A program made the translations under genes and the position numbers. From Eutreptiella sp. 'Long Island Sound 2002' (taxonomy: Eukaryota; Protista; Euglenida), in contig OZ038378.1 in NCBI GenBank assembly GCA_964036045.1, positions 166,780,001 through 166,844,000 of the forward strand: a stretch of DNA of 64,000 nt, in the 5' to 3' direction. Every line of letters begins with the position of its first letter. Position 1 is the first letter of the stretch. The notes beneath the pieces are model-generated. The model was not told where the DNA came from, did not search any database, and was given only the letters and a program-made list of their open reading frames with translations. This document shows positions 1,870-64,000 of the stretch, piece after piece.

Positions 1870-4400
1870 GTATAATTGTGGGAGGTTTTCGGGGTAGGAT
1901 GCGGCAAGTGTGCTGCAGTCGTTAATGAGCATCTGGCTGCGGCGGCATGCTGTGTTGTCCATAAGTTCCTGGGTGATGAAACACCGCACTCACACTCCTA
2001 CGGATGTGGTGGGCGGAGAGTATGCGTTGGACCTTGGATAGGCCGGGAGACCATGAGGGTGTGGCGGCAGAGTTGATCACCTGCTCCTTGCACAACCCCT
2101 AGGCACTAATGAACCTCCTAGCAACTCATCCGCGCCAAATTTGCCCAATGGAGAGGCTATCACTTTGGAGCTTGCAGCCCGTTCCTCATCAACGCTAAGA
2201 GTGCCATGGTGCCAAAGACACTGTGGGCTGAGTGGGTTGACCCCCACTTCGTTCCGGTTGGCACAACGGCGCTAGTACAAGCGCCCTCGACCTGTCCCAA
2301 GGCCGTGGCTCTAATGCGCACATTAAAGAGACAACAATTGGTCAAGCGCAGGGACAAGCCAGCCGACACCCGGGCGTTCGTGAAGTACAGGTCCACAAAC
2401 AAGTGCGCCATGAGCATCGACATGCGGAAGGTCCAAGGGAGATTGCACCAAGCCCAACCTTTTAAACTGCCCAACCTAGAAAAGCTAGGTCCGTCTTGAG
2501 GGGCATGCTGGCTGGGGCATGGGCAGCCACCATTGGCTTGGCCAAGTGCCAGGCGTTGTCAAAAGACATCAAAGTGGCAATAACAAACGGATCCCTTGTG
2601 CTCATCCGTGTCCCATTTGGCTTGCATTAGGCCCCTGCCGTAGTCTAGCACCACACTGTCCCGTTCCTCCGTGACAATTCGGACGGGCCGCAGGTGGTGA
2701 TCGTGCACTGCCTGCAATGGAGTGCCAATGTACTCATAGTGGGCACGGACTAGGACACCGTGCAACACACCAGTGCGCATGGAGCCCAGCAACTACACTT
2801 GCCAACTCTTTCCGAAATCCCTGCACCAAGCACTGCACAAAACAAACGCAAACTCAAAGATGTTGTGTGCCACCAGCCGTTCCAGCCGATTGTCAGCTAG
2901 GAGTCCCATCATTAGGCGGTTGACACCCAAAGGGGCCATCCAAAACGCGCTGCTACATTGAGTTGAGGAGTGCCCTGCACAACACCATTGACTGGTCCTG
3001 CCCCCTTGTCTTCCTTGTGCGAGGCAATGCATACCCTTGCGCAAAAGGTAGTTGCTAACCCGCATACCATTGGGTGATCGGGTGATTGGGATGGCGGTGT
3101 GCTTCAACAAGGACTTGGTGCGGCTGGGTGCTATTTGGCATTTGCCATTTGACACCCTGTAGGCACGTTGCCGGTGACTTGTTGTTTCCCCGCGGCGTGG
3201 TGCGGTCGTCAAATAAATAAGTTCAAAAAACTTCAAATCTATGGCAGTTATGTTTTTTGAATGCCTAAAACTGTTTTTTGAACTTCCAAATTTTGAATGC
3301 TTACCTGAAAATCTTATTTGGGGGGTGCAAGTTGCATTGGTTGCCACTCGCGTGCACAAATTGACGGCGGGAACGGCCGCCCGGTCAGCCTTGCCGGGTG
3401 AAGAACTCATGCGGAACCCCCACTTGGGGGCCTTTGGGCCCACCGTAAGTTCTACGGCCTCAAGCGGGGCGATCAAGAACTCCGCATACTAGTGTACCAC
3501 AACATCCTCCGCCACTTTGTGGCCACCTTGGAGTGTGGCCTCCCCCCGTCTGGCCTTGCACTATGGTGATGACACTGACCATTGGGCCGATCAGTGCCCA
3601 ATACAGGGCTCGGAGCTCATTTTGCCGGACACAAATGGGAAAACTAAAGGTGGGAGGTTGCACAAGGAAGGGCATGTAGGGGGCGACAACGCTGTGTGGG
3701 CCACCAACAATCCCTTCCTAGGGTAGAGCTAACCTAGCACAAAGTGCCACATGTGATGCACGACAAGGGCCGTGCTGCCAAAATGTGCCAAAAAAAATTG
3801 TTCAACTTATCACGCACAGGGCACTTTCTTTCGCATCCGCTGGGGCAGGCGCACTTGGACTGCACATGAACATGTGCGCAACTAACCCCAGCTGTGCACA
3901 GTGGGCCGTACGAGCACCTGCACATCTGTCTGCTCGGGCATCACTAGCTGGTCCACAAGCGGCGAGCGGACCCTTGAGGCTCGCCATCGGAATCGCTATT
4001 GGCGTCCTCATGGCCAGAGATCTCCATGAGGACAAAGGCCGAATCACGAGGTTTTTCCGGCTACTCTAGCCCCTCAAGCTGGGTCCATGAGGACAATGGG
4101 GCAGATTCAATCCGGGGTGTGTCCCCAAGGCTCCCGCTGGCTAGAGCCGAGACACACTGCCATGGGTCTCGTGGCGCCGTTTCGGTGCCTTGGCTTTGGC
4201 CATAGTGCCGGGGCGGGCAATGCATCCCACTTGGGCTAGGGGTGGCATTGTCCCATGTGTAGGCGGGTGAAAACCACCAGCCCCAAACACATTTGGCAGG
4301 CCTCCTAGTTTTCAAACCTAGGGGCTGGGGCTGGTAGTGGCGAGCCTGGGCTTTGCTCAAAGGCGTACACCAGGCTCTCAATTGCATTAGGCATGAGTAT
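1870..4400 (+). pseudogene. Decayed DIRS/VIPER/TATE-type (YR-retrotransposon) pol relic; RT best preserved at ~2200-2760
   Basis: ORF 2206-2499 has RAFVKYRSTNKCAMSIDMRKV...PFKLPNLEKL (RT N-terminal F-x-K...R-x-I-x-D-x-R pattern). Another frame gives WAATIGL (TIDL-like), RVPFGLH*AP (PFG motif of LTR/DIRS RTs) and NVLIVG, with several stops. Faint HS-x-R-x-GG-like YR remnant near 1990 and faint RNase H-like remnant near 3900-4270. Confidence 0.55.
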
Positions 4401-5399: not shown

Positions 5400-6300
5400 G
5401 GAATACCACACCCCCTTGCGCAAAAAAGTGCATGACTGGAGACGTAGCTTGAACCAATTGGATTTAGCTCCCGGCAGCAACAAGCAAGAATGCTCTCCAA
5501 CATGACAAACGCCCGGATGCATGGAAGCAAGTGCTTGCAAAGTTTGAAGTGGGACCTCATGCTGTCAACGAGGGCACCCACAGTACCGTGTCCCACACGC
5601 AACCACCTGCAGCGTTGATGGGGTTATCCAGCAGATTCAAAGATGTGATTGAACTGATTGACCCATATCCAGTAGACCCAGCCCCCAATGCCTTTGCCAG
5701 CTCACAAGCGCCTGCAAACCACAAAGGGCCGAATTCAAGCACCGCAGTGAGTGGGTTGGTTCTCTCCCCTCCCCTTTGCACACAACAGCGATCAATACAT
5801 CGATGGGGCACGAGCTCTTTCATCTTGTTGTTTCTCCTCTCTTCTCACTGCACCATTCCTAACTCATGATTCTTCTCCGCCAGTTTGTCTTAGTGCAAAC
5901 CAGTGGCTAGCCACTTAATGTGGCACCAGAGGCACTGGACGTACTCAGGGGTGCCATGCGGGACCATCTAAGTGAGCGCAAATAAAAGGCGTTTGCAATT
6001 GGGACCACACAGCACATACCTAAATCTCCGCAATGATTGTTTGCTAGAGATAATGTCTGCAGTGTTTGGTTTTTTTGGAGAGCCTACAGACATGATGATG
6101 CAATATGGGGAAGCCGAAGCTTGACTTGAGGGCAATGGACGGAAATGAACAAATGAGGACTTCCGAGCTGGCTCCCCCCAGCCCGTCCTTGTTTCCTCTT
6201 ACCACTACTACCACATCTTGGGCAATTCCCAATCGGCATTGTTAGCTGGCCGTACTATACTTGTTGAAATTAACAGGTAGGTGTACAGGTTGCGAGTTGG
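5400..6300 (+). pseudogene. Heavily decayed non-LTR retrotransposon RT relic (CRE/R2-like motifs)
   Basis: Motif remnants in the expected order across frames: EPIG (RPI-like, ~5450), FEVG..NEG..VSH (QxGVG..GxE..H-like), VDPAPNAFASS (DxxNAFNS-like, ~5670), QGC (~5946), AYRHDDAI (AYxDD, ~6083), YHILG (~6210). Confidence 0.4.
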
Positions 6301-6796
6301 GGTTCGCGTGCTGCTTTGCACCTCCAAGGTGCACATCGGAACTGGTCACGTGTGGTGGTTGACATTTGTACCAATGATGTCTTTGGCTGCAGTCAAACAT
6401 GTGCATTCACGAAGACCCGCATTGTTGGCCGTTGCTCCGGGTGAACTCCATCCGCTTTCACTTTGGCGGTTGGCACTTTACTTGGGACACACTCGCTGCA
6501 AAGAAAAAGTGCAATAAAACCCAAAATGGAATCTCTCATCAACAACAATTTGTTCCAACTAGTACATAGCAAGCGATAAGCTCATTGGAATGAGACCCAC
6601 AAATTGGGGAATGCAACTCAATTTGCAATAGAGAGGGTCCCAACCCTTCATGCCCTACTAGAACTTGGAGGGAGGGTCATCCAAGTGCCACTCATCCTAG
6701 TACACGAACCATTGCGCGGCGGCCCCATGACACCACACAGCCCAAGCCCCCCCCATCCCCCCTCCCATGGCTCGGTGAGCTCCGTGGTATCTCAAG

Positions 6797-56511: not shown

Positions 56512-58201
56512 TGAGGGGAGGAACGAGGGGAAAGAGGTAAAGGGGGGCGGATGGGCAGTTCAAGGGCAGCAGGAGTAGCATCCATGGACCTGGTCCGCTG
56601 TGCGGTGGTGCCCACGTCTATGATTTCGATTCGCCCATTGCGTCAGCACAAATCGTGCGCGTTACAAGACAGGGCACGAGATCGAAGGTCATGCAGCGAT
56701 GCATCCCAGTGGGGGCGTGGAGCCAGTGCTTGTGATAAAAGGGCACCTTGCGCCCAAAGAAATGCATTCTGTACGTTTTCAGCGATTCAGCCATTAGCCG
56801 GGCTCTTTTGTCATTTGTGGCCGAGCGGCGGGGGGGGGGGGGATCAAGCCCCGAAAATTGCGAGGGCGCATTGGGAAAGGGGCGGACTCATGTCATGTTT
56901 TGACCCAGAAAACTGATTTCCCCCGCGCGGTTCTTGATGCAGGCGTACGCCCGGTAGAATATGGGGCCTACTGGACCTTTGAGATACCACGTACCCCAGT
57001 TCCAATATGTTCATTGGTAGTGTCGCCACAGCACGAAGAGCCACAGCGCAGATGCAGCACAACAACACACAGCCACAGAGGCCGGAGTCGGACAGCTCCG
57101 CGCGGGACCCAGCGTGGCACATCACCGAGATTTGTCTGTCTGCCCCAGCGATTTAGGGATTGGTACGCTCCAATAAAAGGGCATGTGCCGTCGTGGACAC
57201 CTCAGAGGTGCACTCCGGATTAGGAAAGGCGTGCAACCCTACCGGAGTGGCAGTGTTGAAGGACCCTCGTGGAATGTAACCATTGTTGGCTCTTGTTGCT
57301 ACCTCGCAGCACTTGTTGACCCCTGTTGACACAGGAACCCAAGGCATGGTGCCCACACAGGGGTTGGGGTGCATGCTTGGGAATGGCACAGGGGAGGCTT
57401 GGCACACCAAGAACTACTATTTGGGTGCTGGATTGTCATATGTCAAGCTAACTACAAAAACTGATGTACCGATGTCTTGTCAAGCCTGGCTACTGGGACC
57501 ATGCAGGTTTGACAACTGTTGGCATTTTCAGTATTGCACGTTGCACTGCACTGCAAACTGCACGCTCTGCAATTGTGGGGTGCACACTACACAAATAGAC
57601 CTGATTCAACAACACATTTTTTTTCAATGTTGTGGGTACACTAGGATGTCCTCAAAGGGCAACTTGCATATGAAACCCCATGGCAGGAACGTGCGGCACA
57701 AACAAAGACATGCACAACACAGGCATAACATGCACAAAATGACCATGAAAGACTATATTATGGTGTGCGCTTTAGGGTATCGTAGAATGGACTCCATGTG
57801 TCGCTTTTTGGCTGGAGTCTTTGACCTTGAAGAATCGAACGTGCAACCAGCATGGGCTCACTTGCACACCCCAAATAGCTCAAAGAAAAAGGCATTTTGG
57901 CCATTTATAGCATATTTTGAGACCAGAGTCCGCCACCTGCAGCATCCGTGCCCGCCTGCCATCATTCACTTTCTTACCCAATTTTTGTAGGAATCAACTT
58001 CATATATCAAGGTATCATCCGTCAAAATTTGGGAGGGAACGGTACAATTTGCGCGTGTTGCTTGCTGCTGCTGCTCGCTGCTTACTAAAAGGGGTAGCTC
58101 CACCCCACGCCTTTAAAAAGGGTTAATGAAAGCCTCATTGGTTAACCTAACCCACCCTCATCGCCTACCACGAAGTCAGGTTCAAATCAGGCTACAGCCA
58201 C

Positions 58202-58591
58202 ATGTGCCAGGTTGCCCGCATGGCGCCTCAGTACCAACCTATCACGCACACCGCCAACAACCCTGACGTGATCTTCCTGGTCCACCGCAGCATTGCCCAA
58301 TACACGCACCTGCTACAACCGGCCCACCCATGCGGCGTAGCCGTCGAGGTATCTCTCCCCGACCGCCCATCTTTCAGTGCGGCAAACATACATGGTCCCT
58401 TTGATCAACGGTCCCGCACGTCACTGGACCATTGGATCGGCCAGCTCCCGCGCCTGGGGCTGCTGATGGGTGATTTCAATCATGGCAAAGAGTCGGTGTG
58501 GCCCCGCGATAGACCACTGCGCTGGTGGCACCACAAGCTGCTGGACGGCACCCTGCTTGACCCGGCCAGCTGCGTCACGACGGACATGAAC
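58202..58591 (+). pseudogene. N-terminal half of the LINE APE endonuclease
   Basis: NIHGP, GDFN and LLD motifs; homology and GC-rich composition end near 58580-58592. Confidence 0.8.
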
Positions 58592-58626
58592 CCATGTTTA
58601 TGCAATAAACATAAGTTTAATTCACT

Positions 58627-59961
58627 GTGCACCTCGTCTGTATCTTAGACTCACTGAGTTTTTGGTTTTTTAACCCCACGTGGGTCACTGCATGCCTGAG
58701 CCAAGTCGCACGATTGGAATTAGACAATAACGGAAAGGCAGACAGTGAATTGCAACAGGCGCATCCTTCTGGGCCAAATTCGAGGGCAGCACAGATCACG
58801 GACGACGCACAGCGTGAACAAGCAGTCATCGCGCTCCGAAAATGGCGCCAGTGGACTGAAGGCCCGTACGCAACCCTCGTGGGGAAAGGACTGCACAAGG
58901 AGGAAATAGCGGAGTGGGCAGTGCAGCTGGAGGAAGACATGGTAGAGCAGGAGGTCCCAGATGGAGCTGTCGGCGCGCTGTGCACCAGAGCGGGACTCCA
59001 GCACCTCGAAAAGGACGAAGCCATCGCAGCTCTTGCGGTGTACCGTGTGCGAAAGAACCTCCAGCCCGACTTCCTCAACGGCACCTTTATCGAGTGGAAG
59101 GACGCCACGAACGCAGGCGGCGAACCGGGAGAACAAGAAGGAGCGGCACGCGAGGCGATTACCACACCGAGCCCGGGGCAAGGGGAATCTGGAGTCGCAG
59201 CATTCCATGAACTCGTAGCCCGACTGGCTGCAGCGCGTGTGGAGAACGACGCACTACGCAAAATATTGGTGCCCCAGCTCAATGAAGAGGCACTGAACAA
59301 ACTGCTTGGTGAGCACCTCCCATACGCCTGGATGGGAAGTTTACTGACAGGCCTGAAGTCCTATAAAGAAAAAAACGAGCAGTGGTTCACTGAGGAGCTG
59401 GCAATTCTAATCTGGAACACTGTCAACGAGGAGCTGAGAGCGAAGCGGCAAGGCATGAAGTCAACGAACCCCCAAAACCAACCCCAGGGGATGCAGATGG
59501 TCCCTCACCAACAGGGAGGCGCCATGGCGGGAGGGGGTACAACTCTTCACACCCCCCCAGGCAATTGCTTTAAATGCGGGGGGCCTGGCCACTGGGCTAC
59601 TAACTGCCCCCTCGCCACTCAAAGGCGGGGGGGGAGGGTTCAAATGATGGGACAGCAGCAGGTCCTAGTCTCGTCGAAGGGGGTCGCATTCGATATGGCT
59701 GGCCCCCCCCCTGGCCAGTGTCGTGTCTGCGGGGGGAACCACTGGGAACAGTACTGCCCGCATGCGAACCCCCAGGGAGTGCCACAGATGTTCCAAAGCG
59801 CCACAGGAAATGCAGCACAACCCCACCCCCAGCAATCCTTTCAGGGTGCCAGTCCACCCCCCGCCGCGGAGGGAGTCCCCCAATTCCCCAACGCGCAGGC
59901 CCAACAACACATGCAGTCCATTTACAGAGAAATGGGGTTCCAAGTTGGAAACCAGGCATAG
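58627..59961 (+). CDS. gag: Gag-like protein with two zinc knuckles (true start uncertain)
   Basis: CFKCGGPGHWATNC (CX2CX4HX4C) and CRVCGGNHWEQYC (CX2CX3HX4C); predicted coiled-coil central region; Gln/Pro-rich end; TAG at 59959-61. Confidence 0.85.
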   Translation: MHLVCILDSLSFWFFNPTWVTACLSQVARLELDNNGKADSELQQAHPSGPNSRAAQITDDAQREQAVIALRKWRQWTEGPYATLVGKGLHKEEIAEWAVQLEEDMVEQEVPDGAVGALCTRAGLQHLEKDEAIAALAVYRVRKNLQPDFLNGTFIEWKDATNAGGEPGEQEGAAREAITTPSPGQGESGVAAFHELVARLAAARVENDALRKILVPQLNEEALNKLLGEHLPYAWMGSLLTGLKSYKEKNEQWFTEELAILIWNTVNEELRAKRQGMKSTNPQNQPQGMQMVPHQQGGAMAGGGTTLHTPPGNCFKCGGPGHWATNCPLATQRRGGRVQMMGQQQVLVSSKGVAFDMAGPPPGQCRVCGGNHWEQYCPHANPQGVPQMFQSATGNAAQPHPQQSFQGASPPPAAEGVPQFPNAQAQQHMQSIYREMGFQVGNQA

Positions 59962-61972
59962 GGGCACGCGGGGGGAGGGTCAGGCAGTGGCACCGTGTAC
60001 ATGGCAGATGTGTCCGTCGCCATACGAACATACTTCTCCATTTCGTCCGATGAATGGTCTGACGGCCCACTGCAACTGGCAGCAAGGGCGATTACATCAG
60101 GATCCAGGGAAGCATACATGTCTGCCCTCCGTCAGTTCGCCAAAAACAGCGAATCATCCGATACTCTTGAGGTCGCACTCAACAAGAGAATCTGCGCAAT
60201 CGCCAGGCGAAAGCGGGGTAGATCTGCAGCAACCGGACTGGTGTCCGCGCTCCGAGTGCTGGAGAAACTCAGGCTCTTACCCCCTTCAGTCCTCCAACTC
60301 CACTGGCTGCAAGTGGAGGCCATTGCACGCATCACAGCACCCCATGCCCCCCCGAGACCCTACGGTACGGCACAACACCTCGAGTTCCTCGGCAGGGCCC
60401 GTATCCACTGGGCGTGGCCCCGCCTGTTCTTCCTCGCGACTTGCGCAGTTGTCTTCAGAATGCGTAGCGGGGATTCGGAAAGCGTCTCGTGGGAAGGGAT
60501 CACCACCCCTGGGTGGATCGAGTTTTTCGATGAGAAACGTGGAAAAGAATGGGTGCAGTACCCACTCTCGCCCTTCCTTGAACAATGGAGGAAGTACGTA
60601 CTATCCCTTAAGCACCCCAACACCCCCCCCCAAAGCCCAGTCCTGCCAGGTGGCAGGAATGCACTGCGCAGCATCCAGAAAGAGTGCATGCAACACTGCC
60701 CCCTTGGGCACATCACATGGCATCCATGGGCACGCATGGCTGCAGCTGCATTCAGGATCCTGGGAGGAAAACTGGCCAGCCTGGCAGACTGGGGAAGGTG
60801 GAAGGACCTCAAACAGGCCAGGCACTATGCCAAGGCACCTGCAGACTGGTCCCTGCCTGAGTTCCTCTCCCTACCCTACCCTGAGAGCTTCACAGGCTTC
60901 CCTTCACGCGACATGGGAGGGGTATCCATCAGAACAAAAGATGTCTGGCCAAGGGAGGCCTGGGAAAAGCGAACAGGGCCCAGGAAACCCCCGCCGAAGC
61001 CAGCTCCCGAATCCGTCAAGCGCCAAAAGCCTCGGGGCACGGCCGGTGAAAACCGGGGCGCGAAGCCAAACCAGTCTGACTCATCTGAAGACTCCTCCTC
61101 TTCCGGAGACTCCTCAGATGAGGGCATGGAAGTGGACGAGGATACCACAAACCCCCCCCCACCCCCTGATGTGGCCGACGCCGGGGCAGGCACCACTGAA
61201 CCCGCTGCTGCGACAGCCCCCACTGAGGGAAGCAAAAACTGCCCCATCGTCCTGGATGACCCCAGAGATGGCATCGCCCCCCCCAAAGTGGGCCCCACAA
61301 GTCCTGATGCGGGGCGACCAGACGAGGGGCTCGACGGGGTGGCGGGGGAAGGAGCAGTTGAGGCAGAACCCACCCCAATGGTCGGCCCCAGAGAAGCGGA
61401 TCCCCAACCATCGGAGGGAACCACCACTGCAGACACCGGTTCCTCACTGGCCCCAGGGGATGGATGTCTCACGCCACAGGCGCAGATACGGTCAGGACCC
61501 CCCCCTGCAGAAAGAGCAATGGACAGGCCCCCCTCCCCCACCCCCCAGACCCCACCCCCAGCCCCCCCGAGAGGGCCTCAGGGCATGCCCCCCCCCCCCC
61601 CCCCAGACTGCCCCGAGGGCAGTCCCAGCCCAGGCAGAAAACGCCCACACAAGCGACTTTTTGCCCTCGACAAGCGCCCCCACGTGCCCAGTGGTGAAAC
61701 ACCGTACCCAGCAGACAAGGTACCGATGGTACAGAATCCGCTGCCCCCACCTGAGCCACGAGACACGGCACCACACAGTGGCTATGACGTCTGTGCGCCT
61801 ATGCGGCACGGACGTTTCCTCCACTGGGTACCAGGACAAATGCTACTGCCAGCTCCTGGAGAGGCACCATGGCCCGATGATAAAGAGGATCGTGACCAGC
61901 CGACCCCGAATGATCACGACAACGGATTGTGCATGCAGGGGTGCCAGGGGTGCAGGAGAGAGACAACATTAA
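59723..61972 (+). CDS. Overlapping +1-frame ORF (749 aa from GTG; stop-free from 59669), S/P/R-rich, no recognised domain
   Basis: Open for 768 codons across the gag 3' end, the gag stop and the whole YR region. It terminates at TAA 61970-72, at the inferred right junction. Confidence 0.45.
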   Translation: MSAGGTTGNSTARMRTPRECHRCSKAPQEMQHNPTPSNPFRVPVHPPPRRESPNSPTRRPNNTCSPFTEKWGSKLETRHRGTRGEGQAVAPCTWQMCPSPYEHTSPFRPMNGLTAHCNWQQGRLHQDPGKHTCLPSVSSPKTANHPILLRSHSTRESAQSPGESGVDLQQPDWCPRSECWRNSGSYPLQSSNSTGCKWRPLHASQHPMPPRDPTVRHNTSSSSAGPVSTGRGPACSSSRLAQLSSECVAGIRKASRGKGSPPLGGSSFSMRNVEKNGCSTHSRPSLNNGGSTYYPLSTPTPPPKAQSCQVAGMHCAASRKSACNTAPLGTSHGIHGHAWLQLHSGSWEENWPAWQTGEGGRTSNRPGTMPRHLQTGPCLSSSPYPTLRASQASLHATWEGYPSEQKMSGQGRPGKSEQGPGNPRRSQLPNPSSAKSLGARPVKTGARSQTSLTHLKTPPLPETPQMRAWKWTRIPQTPPHPLMWPTPGQAPLNPLLRQPPLREAKTAPSSWMTPEMASPPPKWAPQVLMRGDQTRGSTGWRGKEQLRQNPPQWSAPEKRIPNHRREPPLQTPVPHWPQGMDVSRHRRRYGQDPPLQKEQWTGPPPPPPRPHPQPPREGLRACPPPPPQTAPRAVPAQAENAHTSDFLPSTSAPTCPVVKHRTQQTRYRWYRIRCPHLSHETRHHTVAMTSVRLCGTDVSSTGYQDKCYCQLLERHHGPMIKRIVTSRPRMITTTDCACRGARGAGERQH

Positions 61973-62268
61973 ACTCCCCACTGCTCACCACTCGGAAAGG
62001 AGTGCGCCTAGATGCGATCCTCGTCTCCGACACAATCTGGCACGCATTGACTCCCACAGGGTGCTCCACTCGCACCTACCCATCCGCCGGTGACCACAAA
62101 GCAGTGGCGGCAATCTTTGGCTCTGCCATCCAAGATGGATCCGACCACCGGGAGTACACTGGTTTCCGTGCAACACTGGCACACGAGCACCTTCAATACA
62201 TTTCAGAAGCACATGACCAAGTGGTCTCGGCAGACGACCCTGTCCGGGTCCCCACAGGAGCGGTATGA
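59995..62268 (+). CDS. DIRS-class tyrosine recombinase (core ~60080-60830) with a long acidic/Pro-rich tail, running in frame into the LINE APE C-half
   Basis: SGSREAYMSALRQF (SAM-like N-domain), FRMRSGD (R), FFDEK (K), WHPWARMAAA (HxxR box variant), WGRW, ARHY (Y nucleophile position). Confidence 0.85.
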   Translation: MYMADVSVAIRTYFSISSDEWSDGPLQLAARAITSGSREAYMSALRQFAKNSESSDTLEVALNKRICAIARRKRGRSAATGLVSALRVLEKLRLLPPSVLQLHWLQVEAIARITAPHAPPRPYGTAQHLEFLGRARIHWAWPRLFFLATCAVVFRMRSGDSESVSWEGITTPGWIEFFDEKRGKEWVQYPLSPFLEQWRKYVLSLKHPNTPPQSPVLPGGRNALRSIQKECMQHCPLGHITWHPWARMAAAAFRILGGKLASLADWGRWKDLKQARHYAKAPADWSLPEFLSLPYPESFTGFPSRDMGGVSIRTKDVWPREAWEKRTGPRKPPPKPAPESVKRQKPRGTAGENRGAKPNQSDSSEDSSSSGDSSDEGMEVDEDTTNPPPPPDVADAGAGTTEPAAATAPTEGSKNCPIVLDDPRDGIAPPKVGPTSPDAGRPDEGLDGVAGEGAVEAEPTPMVGPREADPQPSEGTTTADTGSSLAPGDGCLTPQAQIRSGPPPAERAMDRPPSPTPQTPPPAPPRGPQGMPPPPPPDCPEGSPSPGRKRPHKRLFALDKRPHVPSGETPYPADKVPMVQNPLPPPEPRDTAPHSGYDVCAPMRHGRFLHWVPGQMLLPAPGEAPWPDDKEDRDQPTPNDHDNGLCMQGCQGCRRETTLNSPLLTTRKGVRLDAILVSDTIWHALTPTGCSTRTYPSAGDHKAVAAIFGSAIQDGSDHREYTGFRATLAHEHLQYISEAHDQVVSADDPVRVPTGAV

Positions 62269-64000
62269 AGCCATTTTCCATGAAATTCACCAATTTGTCC
62301 AGAACCACCGGCCTAAGCCGCCCGAGGTAGACGTCAAGGAGGAGCAGTTTAGGACGGCCTGCAAGTACGCCCCCCACATCTCAGCGTGCACTGAAGGACT
62401 GGGGCGACTACATGGGCAGAAAGCAGGCCATTGCGTCGCACAAGGCATTACGCCGGTTCCACAAGTCTGCAATCAAGTCCGCCCGAACATTCTACCAGGA
62501 CATGAAGGTCTGGATGCACACCCCGTTCCAAATGACGCAGCCTCAACCCACAAAAGAGTCCATGGCAAAGCATTTGCCTCACTTCGCGGGAGATCCACCC
62601 TGGGATCCCGAAGTCATGTGCTCACTCCTACGCCAGTCGCTGACGCCCCAACCCGGCTTCCGAACCACCGCCCCGACATGGGACCAATTCTTAAAAGCCC
62701 TGGGGCGACCCAAACGGAAAGCGGCAGGCCCGGACGGGATCGCACCCCACCTCTTGGGATGGCTGCCACCTGCCCTCCAATGGGAGTTGTGCCTGTGCAT
62801 AGTAAGCGCCTGGAACACCGGGATCATGCCGAAACAGTGGAGCACGTCGCGAGTCACCCTCCTATACAAAAAGGGCTCCCCCACCTCAGCACTGAATTAT
62901 CGGCCCATATCCGTCTCCGGCTGCATGTACACCCTCTTTGCCTCACTGCTGCTACAAGCCATGGAACGGCCCCTCAATCAAGCGTTATCGCCAGAGCAGG
63001 CGGGAGCACGCAAAGGCCACACCACCAGCGCACAGGCACTGAACCTCTGGTCCACACTGCTCCAAAAATGACAATCCCAGCTACGTATGTTTGCTTGACG
63101 TCGCCAAAGCTTTCCCCAGCACACCGCACGCCGCCATCCTGCAAGCCCTCCACTGTATCGGTGCCCCGGCGCATCTCCTCCAGCTGGTCGAACAGATCTA
63201 CCAACGGCCTATCAATCAGTGCGGCGGACTCACCTACAGGGTCCACAGAGGCATCAAAGAAGGGTGCCCCCTATCTCCGGCCCTTTTCACCTTGGTCTAT
63301 CAGTCTTTCCATGGGACCTTGCAGAGAGAGTTCCCTGACGTTGATTTCTTCATCTATGTTGACGGACATAGCTTTCATCGCCAGGTCCGAGGCCGAACTA
63401 CAGGCTGTCCTCCGCCGAGTGCAGGAGCTCTCCCAGCTCCTCGGCTTCAAGATCAACCACTCCAAAACAGAGGTCATCCACTGGGCCTCCCGCTATCGGA
63501 AGCACCAAGTGCACTGGGCTGGCCACACCATCACTGCCTCCCCGCCATTGTTCAAATACCTGGGCCACCTCATTGCGCATCCCACCATGCTGCAGGCAGC
63601 CAGGGCGGACATCCAGCACACCGTCCAATGTGACTTGGCCAGATACCGCACACTGCCACTCGATGCCTTCGAGCGCACCCAGTTACTGTCCTCGGTGCTC
63701 ATGCCCCGATGGGTATACCGCTCACTCTTCGTGGCCAGCGACCACGTGCTCCACGACATTGACATGATGGCCCGGGAGTTCGTCACGACTACCAAAGGGG
63801 TGGAGCGGCGCCACCATGTCCTCCATCTCACCGACCCGGTCTGCCAGGGTGGCACAGGGCTCCACCAAATGTATTGGGCATTCCGCTGCCGCTACATCAC
63901 TTTGCTCCAAACTGCGCTCCGTGACCGCCACGGCAAGGTTCGGGCAATTGCCCCCGCCACCGCCCCCTTCAGCATCCCGCTCCACCACCGGTACCGCCGG
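62231..64000 (+). pseudogene. LINE reverse transcriptase region with four +1 frameshifts
   Basis: Frame moves +1 at ~62230, ~62370 (C run), ~63066 (A run) and 63364 (GAC g GAC inside YVDD). No internal nonsense codons seen in the reconstructed path. Confidence 0.85.

Follow-up and report, generated by a model that had tools for sequence, protein, structure and literature searches.

The window analyzed here is a stretch of 64,000 nucleotides from the euglenid Eutreptiella sp. 'Long Island Sound 2002' (assembly GCA_964036045.1, contig OZ038378.1, positions 166,780,001 to 166,844,000, forward strand), and positions given without further label count from its first letter. Toward its right end lies an insert, 58592-61974, that carries a gag gene and a tyrosine recombinase (YR) gene and is nested within the endonuclease domain of a 5'-truncated long interspersed nuclear element (LINE). 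The features are collected in Table 1. An earlier reading of the same letters, referred to below as the original prediction, took the insert for a cassette encoding neither reverse transcriptase (RT) nor RNase H (RH) and considered three origins for it: a nonautonomous retroelement mobilized in trans, a distinct gag-YR mobile class or a 3'-deleted copy.

The boundaries of the insert are established by LINE paralogues that do not contain it. To the left a 148-aa + strand frame ending at 58648 includes the N-terminal motifs of an apurinic/apyrimidinic endonuclease (APE), and to the right a 757-aa + strand frame, 59995-62268, has the C-terminus …RLDAILVSD…SAGDHKAV. A genome search with the left LINE flank as query returned 21 additional LINE copies, and at least 14 paralogous copies (L035-L050, 77-98% identity) are uninterrupted at the site, reading ...GGACATGAAC followed directly by TCCCCACTGCTC..., that is, 58591 joined to 61975; the empty-site junction in the paralogous copies is …GACATGAAC joined to TCCCCACTG…. 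Once the insert is taken out the APE frame closes up again (TTDMN/SPLLTTRKGVRLD), the translation of an uninterrupted paralogue is a single APE open reading frame (ORF), and in another paralogue the Exo_endo_phos profile is matched over its full length, if weakly, at E 0.0021, below the Pfam cut-off. The window LINE is colinear with its paralogues on either side of the insert, and the RT signals found downstream are, by this colinearity, part of the LINE. The nested insertion is thereby confirmed, as are the APE motifs that the original prediction had recognized on both sides of the cassette and the frame that it had restored by excision at a shared AAC. This trinucleotide, which precedes the insert in the target and recurs at the element end (61972-61974), is all that the two have in common; no target-site duplication (TSD) flanks 58592-61974, the original prediction having seen no long one, neither insert end is repeated anywhere else in the window, and an Rfam scan of the window gave no match.

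Within the insert gag contains two zinc knuckles, at nt ∼59563-59610 and ∼59716-59763, and the TAG that separates it from the YR gene precedes a G-rich run. Both frames are open, that of the recombinase from 59962/59995, in keeping with the original prediction, and the window copy has the capacity to encode Gag together with a recombinase that looks intact. The predicted left-end hairpin is present as well, and the insert (58592-61974) contains no RT or RNase H. A third frame is open throughout the YR gene, over 767 codons in the window and up to 1,326 in copy L031, where it reaches RT.

A search of the whole 2.28 Gb genome with the insert, in which 40 of 225 candidates were scored, listed 52 matches, a lower bound. 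Among these, ∼20 copies of 94-99% identity start at the same base as 58592 and are colinear with the insert to 61891; after the equivalent of 61891 they lack the next 83 bases of the window, and all enter one common sequence consisting of ∼1.8 kb of RT-RNase H and of B1-A2-mid, followed by the tail of 84 bp still present in the window copy. The original prediction had asked whether other copies continue into RT-RH, and in substance they do, RT-RH following the 61891 equivalent and the shared tail coming after it. Identity between the insert and the RT-bearing copies is 99.4% over 3.3 kb.

From a comparison of three copies with longer flanks the full element measures 5,434 bp (L031 1000-6433). 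It is ordered as A1 (76 bp), gag with two CCHC knuckles, TAG, in-frame YR plus linker, an overlapping RT-RNase H ORF, B1 (89 bp), A2, mid and B2, where A1 (L031 998-1073, 76 bp) is identical to A2 (6158-6234), B1 (6073-6161, 89 bp) is identical to B2 (6345-6433) and mid is a 110-bp C-rich segment that separates A2 and B2. The B1-A2 junction reads …CATTAAAC followed by CCATGTTTATG…, and we read it as the image of a circle junction, the joined right and left ends of the element. The segment lost from the window encodes an RT (PF00078, RVT_1, E 1.2e-10; PDB matches to the RTs of feline immunodeficiency virus, murine leukemia virus and foamy virus) with an RNase H-like tail whose DEDD motifs were read from the translation, and the complete RT-RH segment is found in ∼29 copies. 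The YR ORF (L031 2404-3579) lies upstream of RT (from ∼4800). Where the frames of a copy are open over long distances, ORF2 extends over ∼700 codons, and the RT-RH frame, a different one, opens ∼700 nt before ORF2 ends; in many copies frameshifts occur at homopolymer runs and differ from copy to copy, reflecting either real decay or assembly error. Pfam scans of the insert and of the full element gave no integrase or protease match.

The deletion in the window copy removed RT-RH, B1, A2 and the mid segment, with a microhomology at the junction 61891/61892 of 1 nt (C), and it is because of this loss that RT and the terminal repeats are invisible there. The earlier statement that the cassette is devoid of RT/RNase H is therefore correct for this copy, where the region is deleted, and the statement that it has no split direct repeat likewise holds for the window copy but fails for the family, in which A1 = A2 and B1 = B2.

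Several features of the family bear on how its copies are to be counted and classified. Four of them (L006, L007, L012 and L016, G000:C16:17.405-17.612 Mb), spaced at 62-72 kb and with one left flank in common, belong to a large tandem segmental duplication, and transposition events are therefore fewer than a count of copies suggests. An older subfamily of ∼91% identity (L027, L029, L030 and C25:4079038-4082292) has ∼100 extra bp at element position 3011-3015. By coordinates, L010 (C18:36494545-36499700) and L017 (C7:98358233-98363383) have the full internal part and apparently a single terminal B (A…B, no A2-mid-B2), an end that recombination between the two B·A junctions of a circle would be expected to leave.

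Table 1. Features of the window copy and its LINE target, with the minimal elements found elsewhere in the genome
Feature	Position	Strand	Remark
LINE with N-terminal APE endonuclease part (…MGDFNH…LLDPASCVTTDMN)	58146..58591	+	colinear with L035-L039; full APE ORF in uninterrupted paralogues
Target trinucleotide AAC, putative crossover homology with element end …TTAAAC	58589..58591	+	left-flank survey, empty sites
A repeat (A1, 76 bp), left terminus	58592..58667	+	identical to A2 of full-length copies
8-3-8 hairpin ATGTTTAT-GCA-ATAAACAT	58594..58612	+	inner part of B-A palindrome
gag ORF, 444 aa, GTG start, TAG stop 59959-59961	58627..59961	+	zf-CCHC E 3.4e-6
ORF2, in the frame of gag: tyrosine recombinase (aa 1 to ∼325 from GTG 59995), then Pro/acidic-rich linker	59962..61891	+	
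Internal deletion junction	61891..61892	+	element position 3304 joined to 5351 of B2 (or identical 5079 of B1)
B repeat (last 84 of 89 bp), right terminus, ending …CATTAAAC	61892..61974	+	
LINE continued: APE C-terminus (RLD…GDH) to 62268, RT 62412-63633, extends beyond window	61975..64000	+	paralogue colinearity
Minimal A-B elements	G000:C23:32875365-32875518; C11:68349931-68350087; C16:24704876-24705053; C972:27418-27575		

The YR ORF alone gave no Pfam or PDB match in single-sequence searches. Among 1.8 billion representative proteins a profile search picked out 214 relatives, and 6 of the 29 relatives used for an alignment match PF00589; the profile of this 29-sequence alignment scores against Cre with E 8e-4, the match falling on both the catalytic Arg box and the R…W…Y box, and a language-model search with YR led to integrase clusters. 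An AF2 (AlphaFold) model from the same alignment has a predicted local distance difference test (pLDDT) score of 85 and a predicted template modeling score of 0.79, as compared with a pLDDT of 45 for an earlier model from 7 sequences. With the model as Foldseek query Cre ranks first (E 1.6e-7, 314 columns aligned), ahead of lambda Int, XerA, IntI and Tn1549 Int. The residues R157, K181, H243, R247, W269 and Y278 are all kept in the window copy, and together the profile and the model show that the recombinase in ORF2 of the window is real. It resembles recombinases of the Cre/lambda-Int type in its two-domain fold and R-K-H-R-W-Y catalytic set, but sequence identity to them is only 12-15%, and the euglenid enzyme is encoded by a retroelement and has an apparent crossover homology of only 2-3 nt.

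Insertion sites of the family follow a clear rule. All 26 independent left flanks end in RAC (R, purine), with AAC in 20 and GAC in 6, so that AC is common to 26 of 26, and the right flanks that could be read (n = 8) are mutually unrelated. When B is joined to A a palindrome results with 17-nt arms, ATTAAACCCATGTTTAT and ATAAACATAAGTTTAAT, that are 88% complementary and separated by a 3-nt spacer; the hairpin seen by the original prediction is the inner 8 bp of this structure, which is complete only once B joins A (DNA fold, z -2.9). A circular cDNA bearing the B-A junction would be integrated by the Cre-like recombinase of the element, with the crossover placed within the 2-3-nt homology (AAC) between this junction and the target. 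Such a scheme follows the route proposed for DIRS-order elements and agrees with the published idea that their targets are set by a trinucleotide located where the circle is joined (PMC7192593). The empty LINE sites and the RAC rule also bear out what the original prediction had assumed, namely integration of the YR type that leaves no TSD.

The window copy is, very probably, a defective and internally deleted copy of a young, multicopy, autonomous YR retrotransposon of VIPER-like organization that would integrate as circular cDNA. Of the origins first proposed, that of a 3'-deleted copy is the right one, in that the copy is indeed deleted; the deletion is internal and not 3'-terminal, as an 84-bp B tail is kept. 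It most probably arose in replication, before integration, and what favors this timing is that independent derivatives are all cut on the right where B begins, at its 5' edge. Left breakpoints are widely scattered, at element positions 3304 (window), 3360 (L018), 2758 (L023), 2920 (L024) and 2800 (L025) as read from sequence, and at ∼2359 (C21:34112130-34114548) and 2080 (C19:2361240-2363410, C602:4020-6179 and C1842:88625-90784; all G000) by coordinates only. In all of the independent deletion derivatives, at least 7, the right breakpoint is at most 6 nt from the B 5' edge and a single terminal B follows. Four minimal elements of ∼155 bp, again known by coordinates only, have the 3' edge of A joined to the 5' edge of B (Table 1). 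Exceptions to this regularity are L028 (internal, 2425 to 2754), one C25 copy (RT-internal deletion) and L021 (ending at 4137). The first query did not include the RT region, which could bias the sample; when the RT region itself served as query in a second search, no copy came up with an RT segment cut on the left and joined to gag/YR. Conventional splicing was rejected as the source of the deletion, there being no GT…AG at the junction, and so was deletion by the YR, the breakpoints lying at the B 5' edge and not at the B-A crossover.

Some points nevertheless weigh against this interpretation. Among the 52 matches listed the junction 61891/61892 is confined to this locus, and deletion of a full copy in situ fits this copy taken alone; for circles and activity the case is built on genome sequence; the term autonomous derives from the subset of copies with long open frames; and the VIPER-like assignment is one of gene order, repeats and host phylum. 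As for the window copy itself, it is most likely immobile, because its junction is unique among the matches listed and because it lacks B1A2, the counterpart of the internal complementary region (ICR) of DIRS-1.

An unlikely, yet serious, alternative is that a full copy inserted into the LINE and that a random deletion in situ, by slippage or end-joining, later removed RT-RH through mid. The occurrence of the junction at one locus only, among the matches listed, is what such an event would produce, a microhomology of merely 1 nt fits it, and the breakpoints of L028, the C25 copy and L021 lie elsewhere. A random event would, however, have had to stop no more than 5 nt from the 5' edge of B2, and at least 6 other independent derivatives together with the four minimal elements end at the same edge of B, also without A2-mid-B2. 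Much less probable is a nonautonomous gag-YR subfamily that depends on full-length copies for an RT acting in trans. The RT of DIRS-1 is able to act in trans (PMC7192593), and the structure 1-2080 joined to B, found at three places (C19, C602 and C1842), could represent a subfamily; C602 and C1842 are, however, small unplaced contigs and possible duplicates of the C19 locus. The window junction occurs once among the matches listed, and the copy is without the B1A2 junction, whose DIRS-1 counterpart, the ICR, is needed to complete retrotransposition (PMC7192593), so that mobilization in trans as originally proposed finds no support. A distinct RT-less gag-YR class, or a composite gag-YR-APE-RT element of constant arrangement, has the look of the single window copy in its favor and nothing more, and is refuted by 99.4% identity over 3.3 kb with RT-bearing, autonomous copies, unrelated insertion sites and LINE paralogues that are free of the insert.

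Returning to a deletion that preceded integration, we can offer, tentatively and as a possibility rather doubtful at present, an explanation for the constant right breakpoint in terms of a discrete DNA replication intermediate that ends at the B 5' edge. In one version of the scheme a splint or primer of the plus strand, B·A, would grow from A into gag, and an aborted extension product would then be circularized and integrated by the recombinase; alternatively, the minus strand might switch templates at the B 5' edge. If this were true, split-direct-repeat YR retrotransposons would have a step akin to the strong-stop of long terminal repeat (LTR) elements, the sharp edges of the repeats would be explained, and the window copy would have been deleted already at integration.

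The cassette that drew attention to this locus is thus an ordinary defective copy, and the idea of a new gag-YR class can be dropped. Of more value is the family, which is young, abundant and of VIPER-like organization in a free-living euglenid. Replication of split-direct-repeat YR retrotransposons is known only through models and experiments on DIRS-1, and dozens of copies at 99% identity, precise empty sites, the RAC rule and a graded series of deletions make a good natural data set on the process.

Two further observations concern the genome at large. A protein search with RT-RH gave 9,855 first-look candidates, and among the 93 that were scored several more families appear at 38-63% identity, many of the 93 with open frames of 1,000-1,780 aa, as though the retroelements of this genome were numerous, diverse and, by appearance, young. 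The 24-nt Euglena spliced-leader (SL) sequence was counted 5,458 times over both strands (reversed control, 0), an abundance taken as a sign of a euglenid host; it is dispersed along C1, in numbers far in excess of what a simple SL-RNA gene array needs.

Homologue searches help little in placing the family among known elements, as word-based searches returned only ENA/JGI proteins without names; among the nearest RT clusters in the Atlas, Euglenozoa is the sole group among the few taxa recorded. In full-text literature searches on Euglena and tyrosine recombinase no account of such an element came up, the sole related item being a preprint on DAM-bearing DIRS/LTR elements. The family has the features that define the DIRS order, that is, YR, RT plus RNase H and homology between end and target with no TSD, and the window copy itself is without RT-RH. 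Crypton membership was rejected, Cryptons having YR only and this family encoding gag and RT-RH. Ngaro-like and PAT-like elements have the same A1…B1A2B2 split repeats, YR-mediated integration and gag plus RT-RH, but their YR is downstream of RT-RH and that of the euglenid element lies between gag and RT, so that membership in Ngaro/PAT was rejected also. DIRS-1 of Dictyostelium is similar in its overlapping ORFs, in an internal image of the circle junction (the ICR there, B1A2 here), in a trinucleotide shared with the target and in the lack of a TSD (PMC7192593), and its ICR is essential for retrotransposition (PMC7192593). It differs in having inverted terminal repeats and the ICR, where the euglenid element has direct split repeats; DIRS-like elements also carry a methyltransferase domain, which Pfam scans of the euglenid element did not detect, and on these two grounds a DIRS-1-type element was rejected.

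There remain VIPER, an element of trypanosomes, and TATE, both of the VIPER-like superfamily in the order DIRS, with gag-YR-RT/RH order and split repeats A1…B1A2B2 (PMC6681497). The literature consulted describes VIPER-like elements from kinetoplastids only (PMC6681497, PMC3783388), and SIRE is the A2-B2 derivative of VIPER and TATE (PMC6681497). The present family differs in that its host is a euglenid, that gag and YR stand in one frame split by TAG and that A2 and B2 are set apart by a C-rich segment of 110 bp. The minimal A-B elements are similar to SIRE, being short and made of A and B only, but are without the mid segment. In the order gag-YR-RT/RH, in split direct repeats A1…B1A2B2 (A1 and one B only in the window copy), in the absence of a TSD, in having a host of the phylum Euglenozoa (PMC6681497) and in giving rise to short A/B-only derivatives, the euglenid family is like VIPER/TATE.

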